NCBI GenBank assembly: GCA_965644315.1
Contig: CBFFRQ010000096.1
Location: forward strand, 62,001 to 126,000
Direction of reading: 5' to 3'
Length of the DNA stretch: 64,000 bases
Source of the DNA: Caecitellus pseudoparvulus
Taxonomy: Eukaryota > Protista > Bigyra: Bicosoecida
Under the pieces are notes generated by a model. That model did not search any database and was not told the DNA's origin. It saw only the letters and a program-made list of their open reading frames with translations. Position numbers and translations under genes: made by a program. The stretch's first letter is position 1, and each line of letters starts with the position of its first letter. This document shows, one piece after another, positions 48,646-52,219 of the stretch.

Positions 48646-49261
48646 AAGGAATGAATGCAAGGTTGCAGTGCCCCGCTTGACAGGCCGATGTGCGGATTCG
48701 TGTGAGGCCTCGCACGTGCCCGGTCCTGCCGCCTCTCGCCCAGCTCGGACACGGCAGGGGATGCCAGCGCGGGTGCCTTCGTCAGAGGGGTCTACACAGA
48801 GTCGCCGAAGGGGCATGCTCCTCACCACACGCAACTGGCCCTCAAGCAACACTTCCAAAACACCCCCACTCCCCGCTGCTGCTCGTGCGCCCCTTACCCA
48901 CGCATACAGTCACCCCTTGGCTTTGACCTTCACAAGGCAGACCACGTGGGTTGCGTCTGTTGCGAGCGATCGAGGTTCAGCGCAGAACGTCTGTACGTCT
49001 GGGCTTCCACCAGGTGCCACACCAGTGAATTCGAAGACCCGGGTTTACACACACTTTCTTCTTCTTCATGTGCGTGTTTGCACGCGTATGCGGCGCTTGG
49101 GCACTGCGAGCGCCCCGGTTCTGTGTTTTTGCGGAATTCTCGGTGGACGGCGCTGCCGCTCCTGCCGACTCGAATCCAGAACTTTTGCGAGCGCTCGCCA
49201 TTGCGGCCTGCTCTGTGCAGAGGAGCCTTGGAGTGACTTGTGCTGCCTTGCCTCTCGCAGA

Positions 49262-50697
49262 ATGCTGGGATCCCGTCGTTCTGCAACTGTCGCCAATGCT
49301 CTGCTGGAGCACATGCGCAGTGGCGTGGGCGAGGCCGTGACTGTCGTGGACCTTCGCCAGGTGGCCAAGCGTGCCGCCGAGTGGTCTGCCCTGCTGCCAC
49401 GAGTGACACCCCACTATGGTGAGTGAATTCGTGCAGTTTCGAAGTCCGGCATCGTCCCACCATCACACGGCCCCCTTCTGATCCCTTCGCAGCCGTCAAG
49501 TGCAACCCCGACCTAGCCATTGCCAGCACCCTGGCGGAATGTGGCGTGAACTTCGACTGTGCCTCCGCCACTGAGATGGACATGATCGTGTCCAAGGTTG
49601 GGGTGTCTCCAGACCGCGTCATTTACGCCCACCCCACCAAGGCGCCTTCCCAGCTGCGGTACGCTGTGGACAATGGCGTGGACCTGACCGTCGTGGACAG
49701 CATTGAGGAGGTGGAGAAGTTGGCTGCGCTGCACCCCACCGCCAAGATTGTCGTGCGCATCAAGGTGGACGACTCCAACTCCGCCATGCCTTTCTCGGCA
49801 AAGTTCGGTGCGGACCTGTCAGCCGTCCCGGCTATCATGGACCGTGCTTCCAAGCTCGGGATGGCTGTCGTCGGCGTGTCCTACCACGTAGGCTCTGGCT
49901 GCGAGCACCCTGACACGTTCTACAAGGCTGTCGGCGCGGCTAACACCGCTTTTGGCTACGGCAAGGCTGCAGGGCACGCCATGACGCTGCTGAACCTGGG
50001 TGGCGGCTACCCCGGCCGCGCCGACCCCGGCGCCCCCACGCACATGCTGCCCAGCATCTTCCCCACCGTGGCAGCCCGCATCAACGCTGCCCTGAACGAG
50101 TTCTTCCCCGAGTCCCGCGTGGACAGCGTGTCTGGGCAGCCCATCCGAGTCATCGCTGAGCCAGGGCGGTACTTCGTCAGTTCCTGCCAGACCATGGCCA
50201 CCCCCATCATTGCCCAGCGCATTGAGGGCGACCCTGCCGGGGACGGCATGTCTCGCCTGTACATCTCTGACGGCGTGTACGGATCCTTCAACTGTGTCAT
50301 CTTCGACCAGCAGAAGCCCAGCCCAAGCTTCGTGCCCCGGGAGCTGCTGGAGGCACCCGATGCTGCGGCGGTTCTGGAGGCCATGACGCCCCTTGCTCCC
50401 CCCTCTGATGATGATGAGGTGCCCTCCCAGCACATGTCTGTGTGGGGCCCCACCTGCGACTCCGTGGACCTGGTGGTGAAGGACCTGCGCGTGCCTGTGG
50501 GCACCCGCATCGGCACTGGGGACTGGTTCGTGTGGGACAACATGGGCGCATACACCAACGCATCCGCCTCCACGTTCAACGGCTTCCATGTCCCCAACCG
50601 TGCCTACATCCCAGCTTCAGCCCAGTGGGACTTCGAGGGCTTGGTGCAGGAGGTGGCACAGGAGCTGCACCAGCACCAGCCCACGCCGTTTTCCTAG
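49262..50697 (+). CDS. ODC1: Ornithine decarboxylase (fold-type III PLP enzyme), 2 coding exons
   Basis: PHY|AVKCN (PLP lysine, intron 49419-49492), FDCAS, KFGA, YHVGSG, LGGGYPG, AEPGRYFV, WGPTCDSVD, NMGAYT. Substrate specificity is inferred. Confidence 0.9.
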
Positions 50698-50704
50698 GGA
50701 GCGA

Positions 50705-50783
50705 CGGTGACGGGTTTCATGTTGCGGGCTGCAACCCCTCCTGCCATTCAGGGGGGCGCGCACCCCTCAACACACCGTCACCG
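50705..50783 (+). promoter_or_regulatory. Long RNA hairpin 7 nt downstream of the ODC UAG (candidate readthrough element)
   Basis: CGGTGACGG (50705-50713) is the exact reverse complement of CCGTCACCG (50775-50783). Inner pairings are TGTTG/CAACA, GGG/CCC, TGC/GCA and CCCTCCTG/CAGGGGGG around a CCATT loop. Confidence 0.5.
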
Positions 50784-51032
50784 GGCAAGCCATGGTGTGT
50801 CCCACTTCAAGCCGGCACAGGGGCACACCGCGTGGAGGACACAGCAGGTGCGGGGTGTTCACACCTTTGTACCTGGTTGGGCTGCGCAGCGGGCGGCAGC
50901 AGGCGTCGTGGATGCCATGCTGCTGCACACCACCGCCTACGCAGCCAAGGAGGCAGGCTAACGCCAGGTGGACAGAGCAATGCATTCTGGGCGTCAGCAG
51001 GCTTGAGGGAGTCGGCTTTGCCTGCGCGGCAT

Positions 51033-51944
51033 TCACTGGGCCTGCGATCCCATTGCCGTGGAGACACACTCAGCCAACTCATCTGGCTGAACACCTGCAG
51101 CGCCTGAGGAGTGCAGCAGGCACAGGAGTGGCTCGGCTGCTTTGTCGTCGTCCTGGCGTATGAGCCCAACGTGCACGTTTGCGTCCGCGATGGCTTGCTC
51201 GTCAGCGGTGGGGTCCACTAGCCAGTGCCCAGCCACCCTCGACAGCGACGTGGCAGTGGGCAGGCTGCCCACTGCCACAGAGCACGTCACGGGGGACAGC
51301 CCCTCTGCCTTCAGCACCTCTGACGAAGGGGCCAGGTGTGCCTTGCCAGTAGCTGGGTGCACCACGACACTTGGCAGGGCCGTGGAAGCCAGCGCCTGCC
51401 CCGCAGCCGCAACTGCAGCTGCCAGTGGAGACCCGTCCAAGCTTGTCACGAGCAAGTCGACCTTGAGAGCCCACACTGCCTTTCCCTCGGCAATGCAGAG
51501 GCTGGAGAGGTTCACCACCTTGCTGCGAATGAAGAGCCGACCCAACAACTCGGCCAGCGCGTAGGCTTCATCAGGCGTGGAAGATGGTGAGAAATCGGGA
51601 GAGCACTGAGGTGTCATGTGCACCTGGAACTCGACCACCCCGTCCTCAGGGGCGTGCTCTTGTGGCACTGTTGCCACGCCCCTCACCGTCGCCACAACGC
51701 TGTTCCCGCCGATCGTGGCTACTGCTGAGCCATGCCCGCTTGTCACGTAATCTGCAATCACACGGAAAGTTTCGCTGCCTGAAAGAGAAGCACAGGGCCG
51801 TAGTGCAGGTCACACACCCTCCTGCACACTCAAGCTGCGCTGCTGAACAGCTGACCGGCCATCTGGCCGGATCCCTTTCGAGAGGAACTGCTTCGTGTAC
51901 TCCAGGGGCTGTAGCGCCTTGAAAGCATCTGCAGACAGAGCCAT
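51033..51944 (-). CDS. EXOSC8: Exosome complex component RRP43 (RNase PH family), 2 exons
   Basis: AFKALQPLEYTKQFLSKGIRPDGR, GSAVATIGGNSVVATVR, LCIAEGKAVW, LDGS, LVDPTADE. Predicted intron 51752-51817. Confidence 0.88.
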
Positions 51945-52219
51945 CCTAACTCCTGTGTAGTTTGGTGGTGCATGCGAGTGTGAGGGGAAATCATTGTCCT
52001 GGGGCGCCTGCAGGAATTTGTCAAGGCCGGGAGGGTGATAGGTCCTGCGGAAATCGGTGCTCTGGCATACCTAGGCCAAAACCGTACACCCGTATGCTGA
52101 GAAGCCGGCGCACCAGGATTAGCGTACATCACTTAGGTCGCTTACTGTTAGGCTTGCCAGGAGGCCTCATCGCCGAGCATCTCTCGAAGCTCGACGCAGT
52201 CGCAAGCGAAAGCTTGAGG

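Follow-up and report, generated by a model that had tools for sequence, protein, structure and literature searches.

Stop codons that are read through with the help of an extended 3' stem-loop were described by Firth et al. 2011 (PMC3159437) in alphaviruses, in tobra-, furo- and pecluviruses and in a coltivirus. In this class, the stem, of about 9-12 bp, begins 7-9 nucleotides (nt) after the stop, a variable structured region separates its two arms, the element spans about 90-150 nt after the stop, and one or two codons just 3' of the stem are conserved. Recoding is also known to cluster in polyamine metabolism, as seen in the +1 frameshift of antizyme, the readthrough tail of AMD1 and the sensors formed by upstream open reading frames (uORFs) or uCC. 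The tail of vertebrate AMD1 is conserved and stalls ribosomes (PMC13025110), and polyamines are reported to enhance UAG readthrough in murine leukemia virus (MuLV) in the passage of PMC4178896 that cites Petros 2005. According to a 2016 review of recoding, no organism was known in which readthrough takes the place of the antizyme frameshift (PMC5009743). Here, we analyzed the stop codon of the ornithine decarboxylase (ODC) gene in a 64,000-nt stretch of DNA (hereafter the window) from the bicosoecid Caecitellus pseudoparvulus (assembly GCA_965644315.1, contig CBFFRQ010000096.1, positions 62,001 to 126,000 of the forward strand); all coordinates are those of the window. No report of readthrough on ODC itself was found in the literature searches made.

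Our analysis suggests, with a probability of about 0.72, that the UAG of ODC undergoes programmed readthrough stimulated by a 3' stem-loop, as in the viral cases. This was the reading put forward in the initial annotation of the window, and the comparative evidence supports it. Some ribosomes very probably read past the UAG and produce a longer enzyme, since readthrough is the route that remains to the open reading frame (ORF) beyond the stop once an intron, a separate ORF, an antisense gene and a reassigned UAG look unlikely. Most ribosomes would terminate at the UAG and release the standard ODC, and a fraction would decode it with a near-cognate tRNA, aided by two elements, the context C-UAG-GGA, which is invariant, and a stable stem-loop whose base stem would lie at the mRNA entrance of the ribosome. 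These ribosomes would then continue for 87 codons to a TAA, and the longer isoform would carry a disordered linker of about 58 residues followed by a conserved C-terminal helix of about 27 residues that ends in KEAG. The elements concerned are:

50695-50697, + strand: first ODC stop, UAG, the proposed readthrough site, in the context C-UAG-GGA, which is invariant in all five orthologous sequences.
50698-50704, + strand: 7-nt spacer GGAGCGA, of which the GGA is invariant and the following 4 nt vary.
50705-50783, + strand: predicted extended stem-loop of 28 bp, with the 5' arm at 50705-50713 and the 3' arm at 50775-50783; the upper stem is variable and always paired.
50773-50788, + strand: CACCGTCACCGGGCAA, the 3' arm and the GGCAA just after it; no differences among the window, L001, L002 and L011, and two changes in L014.
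50698-50958, + strand: proposed readthrough extension, 87 codons in the ODC frame, the only frame open in all five sequences.
50875-50958, + strand: conserved C-terminal part of the extension in the alignment, F[VI]P...AQRA...[KR]EAG, predicted to form a helix (residues 60-86).
50959-50961, + strand: second stop, TAA, in the block AAGGAGGC[A/T]GG[C/A]TAAC; TAA in all five sequences.

The homologue search, whose query was the ODC main exon alone, gave P0002 (57% identical; locus L001) and P0003 (56%; locus L002) as the nearest relatives, and in both loci ODC is convergent on RRP43, the same arrangement as in the window. Two further loci were added, L011 by a pattern scan of metagenomes and L014 by a search with RRP43 (RRP43 63% identical; only the 3' end of ODC lies on the contig), and the convergent arrangement is present in all four. 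The other matches of the metagenome scan, L009 and L010, were chance matches, which left L011 as its only true orthologue, and a pattern scan of viral contigs gave no match. L013 was rejected as an unrelated sequence, and the contig L015, which holds a distant RRP43, was rejected as an orthologous locus, having no ODC alongside. In the sister ODC clade (L003, L004 and L012; 41-44% identical), the gene closes with TAA, more stops follow at once and the neighbour gene is another one. The highly fragmented assembly GCA_024449685.1 holds both L001, with the tail, and L004, from the sister clade and without it, and seems to be a mixture of organisms.

Comparison of the five sequences revealed that stop identity and 3' context are conserved: C-UAG-GGA is kept in all of them, though the ODC proteins are only 56-57% identical. 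The invariance of the stop context is all the more striking given that the ODC tails just 5' of the UAG can barely be aligned between lineages. A signal kept across species that have diverged so far in the enzyme itself is thus under clear selection. As to stop usage, the 30 crude long ORFs of the window end in TGA (26), TAG (3) or TAA (1). Both ODC stops, the UAG and then the UAA, are therefore rare codons in the window, and both are conserved in all orthologues.

The layout described in the initial annotation, that is, the UAG, GGA, a 7-nt spacer and a hairpin of about 28 bp with a 9-bp base, was confirmed by the sequence and by folding. The base of the hairpin is a perfect 9-bp stem, CGGUGACGG/CCGUCACCG, starting 7 nt after the UAG. 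The minimum free energy is -45.1 kcal/mol over 86 nt, within the top 0.4-0.6% of random 86-nt stretches of the window, and z against dinucleotide shuffles ranges from -2.3 to -3.3. Folding covered nested structures only, and these give a simple extended hairpin. When each of the five orthologues was folded alone, a single long hairpin was predicted in the same register with the 7-nt spacer (z of -3.28, -3.28, -3.59, -3.39 and -2.69; 0-2 of 200 shuffles fold as well), so that a stable stem is expected about 8 nt after the stop in every species. The arms read CGGUG[A/G]CGG and CCGUC[A/C]CCG across the five sequences, and the base stem hardly varies (an A-U to G.U change, and a U.C mismatch in L014). 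The upper stems consist of unrelated sequence in each lineage, yet are paired throughout. RNAalifold indicated five compensatory pairs, which lie in the poorly alignable upper stem. The 16-mer CACCGTCACCGGGCAA is unique in the 30.6-Mb genome and its sole 1-mismatch match is at control level; a repeated element was rejected on these grounds.

Beyond the UAG, the ODC frame continues without a stop for 87, 90, 106, 103 and 107 codons in the five sequences before reaching a TAA, as the initial annotation had described for the window, and the extension ends in [KR]EAG in all five. Frame +0 is the sole one of the six frames that is stop-free across all five sequences. Coding potential was assessed on frame-agnostic DNA alignments, which avoids the bias of protein-guided alignment. 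Gap lengths are always divisible by 3, alone or in sum (3 and 12; 3 and 9; 12 and 7+2; 6, 6 and 3), and this includes the gaps 3' of the hairpin (3; 12; 6 and 3). The Nei-Gojobori omega of three L001-group pairs is 0.40, 0.42 and 0.36 in frame 0, and 0.65-1.8 in frames +1 and +2. Over the approximately 68 codons 3' of the hairpin, the pN/pS values are 0.37, 0.59 and 0.49, a value of 1 being reached in no more than 0.1% of bootstraps; the shifted frames give 0.96-2.15. The independent comparison of the window with L014 gave a pN/pS of 0.71 (bootstrap interval 0.56-0.91), and 0.92 and 0.91 in the shifted frames; over the last 35 codons of this pair the mismatches by codon position are 10, 16 and 26 (pS 0.86, pN 0.37). 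In the KEAG-TAA block, the window differs from the L001 group by two synonymous third-position differences only. Judged from these alignments, the extension is probably translated in the ODC frame and is evolving under moderate purifying selection at the protein level, strongest in the last 30 residues or so, as expected for a conserved and coding-like ORF in frame beyond the stop. Conservation of the frame, the stem and the C-terminal peptide in relatives, to which the initial annotation had looked, is thus present in four orthologues with a coding pattern, and the impression that the last codons are coding-like is backed by the substitutions.

These data bear directly on the alternative that the region is an ordinary, unusually long 3' untranslated region (UTR), with a conserved hairpin regulating stability, localisation or protein binding, and is never translated. 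Nucleotide-level conservation of the hairpin arms and of the UAG context, together with the low amino-acid conservation of the proximal part of the extension, is in favour of such an element. Open frames of this length also arise readily by chance at this GC content (8% by composition and 16% empirically), in agreement with the earlier remark that an 87-codon frame is not rare by itself. A pure RNA element needs no frame, yet one frame alone is open in five sequences, indel lengths are divisible by 3, and only the ODC frame has a pN/pS below 1, also over the 68 codons past the hairpin. Furthermore, the TAA is in phase in all species, the KEAG codons differ at synonymous sites only, and a 3' UTR of 299 nt would be several times longer than those implied by the poly(A) signals near other stops of the window. 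We therefore consider an untranslated element unlikely.

To determine the structure of the mRNA, 3301 letters (48700-52000) were compared with four public runs, all of which consist of contigs. Contigs of X1, X4 and X5 skip the GT..AG introns 49070-49260, 49419-49492 and 51752-51817, which indicates that they derive from RNA. Unbroken spans cover 49495-50996 (X1 record 1), 50301-50839 (X5 record 12) and 50701-50995 (X4 record 6). The UAG is present in X1 and X5, and the RNA contigs have neither a joint nor a variant at this position; the UAG is therefore genuine and is retained in the dominant mature ODC mRNA. The mRNA also passes the second stop, with an apparent end about 35 nt 3' of the TAA, although evidence at the contig level cannot prove where an RNA ends and can hide rare isoforms. 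The initial annotation had named a poly(A) site upstream of about 50960 and an intron removing the UAG as findings that would speak for other readings: the mRNA runs through 50961 to end near 50996, and no such joint occurs in the RNA contigs. Among the strain single-nucleotide polymorphisms of the RNA runs, seven fall in the coding sequence and none in the 299 nt 3' of the UAG, numbers too small for a test of selection.

Less probable again is a minor spliced mRNA that drops the UAG, using CUAG/G as 3' splice site or an acceptor within the extension. CCUAG/GGA does resemble a 3' splice site, and rare isoforms drop out of contig data. Against this, no joint besides the three known introns was seen in the contigs of the four RNA runs, and with an omega of 0.09-0.18 the tail 5' of the UAG is clearly coding. 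In four species (all but L014), the 400 nt upstream hold no consensus-like donor in frame, and in the window species the intron would measure about 45-57 nt, compared with 66-191 nt for the known introns. Splicing would moreover leave the conserved hairpin 7 nt after the stop unexplained.

The 3' end of the gene also argues for translation to the second stop. Two further elements are found here:

50979-50986, strand not assigned: palindrome AATGCATT, putative poly(A) signal shared by ODC (+) and RRP43 (-), with AAUGCA on both strands.
50995-50996, + strand: probable 3' end of the ODC mRNA, X1 record 1 ending at 50996 and X4 record 6 at 50995; contig ends are only suggestive.

The motif AATGCA occurs within 60 nt 3' of the stop in 8 of the 29 crude ORFs of the window, against 0.36 expected, at distances of 6-46 nt. 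In ODC it occupies 50979-50984, at a distance of 17 nt from the TAA and 281 nt from the UAG, and the ODC mRNA contigs end 11-12 nt beyond it. On the opposite strand AATGCATT sits 46 nt 3' of the RRP43 TGA; L001 and L014 keep the palindrome, and L002 has AATGTATT. It is probable, from its sequence and position, that AATGCATT serves ODC and RRP43 as a bidirectional poly(A) signal. The palindrome also occurs beside the distant RRP43 of contig L015. The end of RRP43 is 35-74 nt from the second stop in the relatives compared and 71 nt in the window. The poly(A) signal and the RRP43 end are thus both placed close to the TAA, indicating that the genome treats the ODC gene as ending at the TAA rather than at the UAG, and the gene model would have to be corrected to a functional end at 50961. 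The spacing argument of the initial annotation was borne out: convergent gene pairs separated by 7, 19, 38 and 81 nt were found again, as were the 335 nt (from the UAG) or 71 nt (from the TAA) between ODC and RRP43. Spacings of 6, 133 and 255 nt occur as well; those of 133 and 255 nt may stem from incomplete gene models in the crude ORF list. In L001 (position ~7640) and L002 (~3350) an internal AATGCA, in the codons G-N-A-V-A, lies about 75 nt before the TAA; it is not present in the window, L011 or L014. It could give a shorter mRNA in these two species, if the same poly(A) signal is used there.

The position of the poly(A) signals also bears on whether the extension is a separate small ORF reached by reinitiation or internal initiation, an antisense gene, or the 3' UTR of RRP43, all of which we regard as very unlikely. 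A minus-strand ORF of 165 amino acids was called over the region in L001 and a shadow frame has an omega of about 0.5, but no antisense frame is free of stops across all species, and an omega near 0.5 is expected for an antisense frame that shares third positions. The extension is without any AUG in L002 and L014, which speaks against a separate ORF. The RRP43 signal at 50986-50981 (minus strand) precedes the extension, so the RRP43 mRNA should end near 50969, short of it. Finally, an error of sequencing or assembly at the UAG, or the use of UAG as a sense codon by this organism, is a prior possibility and nothing else and can practically be dismissed: the initial annotation had raised the sequencing error, and the UAG is found in independent RNA contigs and four orthologues, while TAG closes other long ORFs of the window and ORFs of up to 5243 codons run uninterrupted under the standard code.

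Several observations weigh against stimulated readthrough. The G at position +4 is not the classic leaky context of animals and yeast. The comparative data consist of five sequences from about three deep lineages, and the sister clade described above is without the extension, so that the feature is specific to one clade. As for the structure, the base stem of L014 carries a U.C mismatch, and strict covariation rests on realigned upper stems because the base stem is almost invariant. The ODC body is under stronger selection (omega 0.07-0.10) than the extension (about 0.4), whose proximal third is under little amino-acid constraint. A rare spliced isoform may have escaped the contigs, and the evidence for translation past the UAG is comparative and indirect.

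With regard to the product of readthrough, AlphaFold2 run on the five-sequence alignment of the extension gave a mean predicted local distance difference test (pLDDT) score of 59, with residues 1-58 predicted as disordered and a helix at residues 60-86 with a pLDDT of 67-79. A Pfam search of the extension gave no match, and its comparison with the rodent ODC C-terminus showed no similarity (E = 4.4). Our best guess, which is speculative, is that the tail of the extended ODC is regulatory and affects stability or activity, possibly in connection with the polyamine level. Two further ideas are just as speculative: the longer isoform may regulate through a stall at the second stop like that of AMD1, and readthrough may increase with the polyamine level. 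The conserved C-terminal residues and the TAA-C of the extension would be compatible with such a stall. We can only tentatively propose, and consider rather doubtful, that readthrough raised by high spermidine yields an unstable or inactive ODC, or a stall at the TAA that is caused by the conserved C-terminal peptide and silences the mRNA, and so substitutes for the antizyme frameshift. An antizyme domain was not detected in this genome, a weak test because antizyme is divergent and frameshifted, and this group of heterotrophic marine protists is apparently without antizyme. The locus may offer a candidate route of polyamine feedback that does not depend on antizyme. In cellular genes, readthrough is rarely driven by an extended stem-loop of the viral type, and the element, of about 110 nt, is compact enough for the study of structure-stimulated UAG readthrough in a non-model eukaryote.

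The remaining features of the gene and of its neighbour are:

48961-49069, + strand: ODC 5' leader exon, reaching at least this far upstream; X1 record 1 joins 49069 to 49261.
49070-49260, + strand: GT..AG intron of 191 nt in the ODC 5' leader (RNA contigs X1 and X5).
49262-49418, + strand: first coding exon of ODC, with the ATG at 49262 and the end ...PHY(A).
49419-49492, + strand: GT..AG intron of 74 nt, removed in X4 and X5 contigs (49417/49492 splice); X1 shows a 2-nt strain difference.
49493-50694, + strand: main coding exon of ODC, last sense codon Ser; PF02784 at 3.2e-60, PF00278 at 5.9e-15; 7499 homologues.
51033-51035, - strand: TGA stop codon of RRP43, the gene convergent on ODC, with RNase_PH and RNase_PH_C domains.

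The presence of the Orn_Arg_deC_N and Orn_DAP_Arg_deC domains in Pfam identifies ODC as a group IV pyridoxal phosphate (PLP) decarboxylase, and the Pfam domains bear out both gene names given in the initial annotation. The leader splice joins ...TTCAT to AATGCTGG, which bears on the question of uORFs in the ODC leader. In X1, a contig from a seawater metatranscriptome, 49418 is joined to 49495 with CT between, compared with 49417/49492 in culture runs; this deviation at the exon border is probably a strain difference. Strain polymorphism is also seen in the acidic GATGATGATGAG stretch of ODC at 50404-50415, where X7 has a 3-nt in-frame deletion at 50406 and the substitutions A>G (50411) and T>G (50415) occur in several runs. 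The sequence occurs in seawater metatranscriptomes. The genome is compact (30.6 Mb in 215 contigs, about 62% GC), and no LHC genes were found in it.

Comparison with the known systems places the ODC element near the viral class of extended stem-loops, which it resembles in the spacer, the stem, the variable middle and the conserved codons 3' of the stem (GGCAA in ODC). It differs in belonging to a cellular gene of a protist and in having UAG-GGA where UGA-CGG or UGA-CUA is typical. In its stop context ODC is closer to MuLV than to the UGA-CGG/UGA-CUA class. Like MuLV gag-pol, it has a UAG, a purine-rich spacer of 7-8 nt and then a stable RNA structure. In MuLV, GGA directly follows the UAG. 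The MuLV layout invoked in the initial annotation therefore holds for UAG-GGA and the spacer; MuLV has a compact pseudoknot, whereas the structure predicted here, from nested folds only, is a long extended stem-loop. With AMD1 the locus shares a polyamine-synthesis enzyme, an in-frame tail of about 90-130 codons and conservation that is strongest at the end of the tail and at the second stop; AMD1 differs in having no strong 3' structure and low readthrough, and the two tails have no sequence similarity. The proposal also recalls the degron of mammalian ODC and antizyme, in that ODC would be controlled via its C-terminus and recoding would act as a polyamine sensor in the same pathway. Unlike antizyme feedback, the recoding proposed here would take place on ODC itself.

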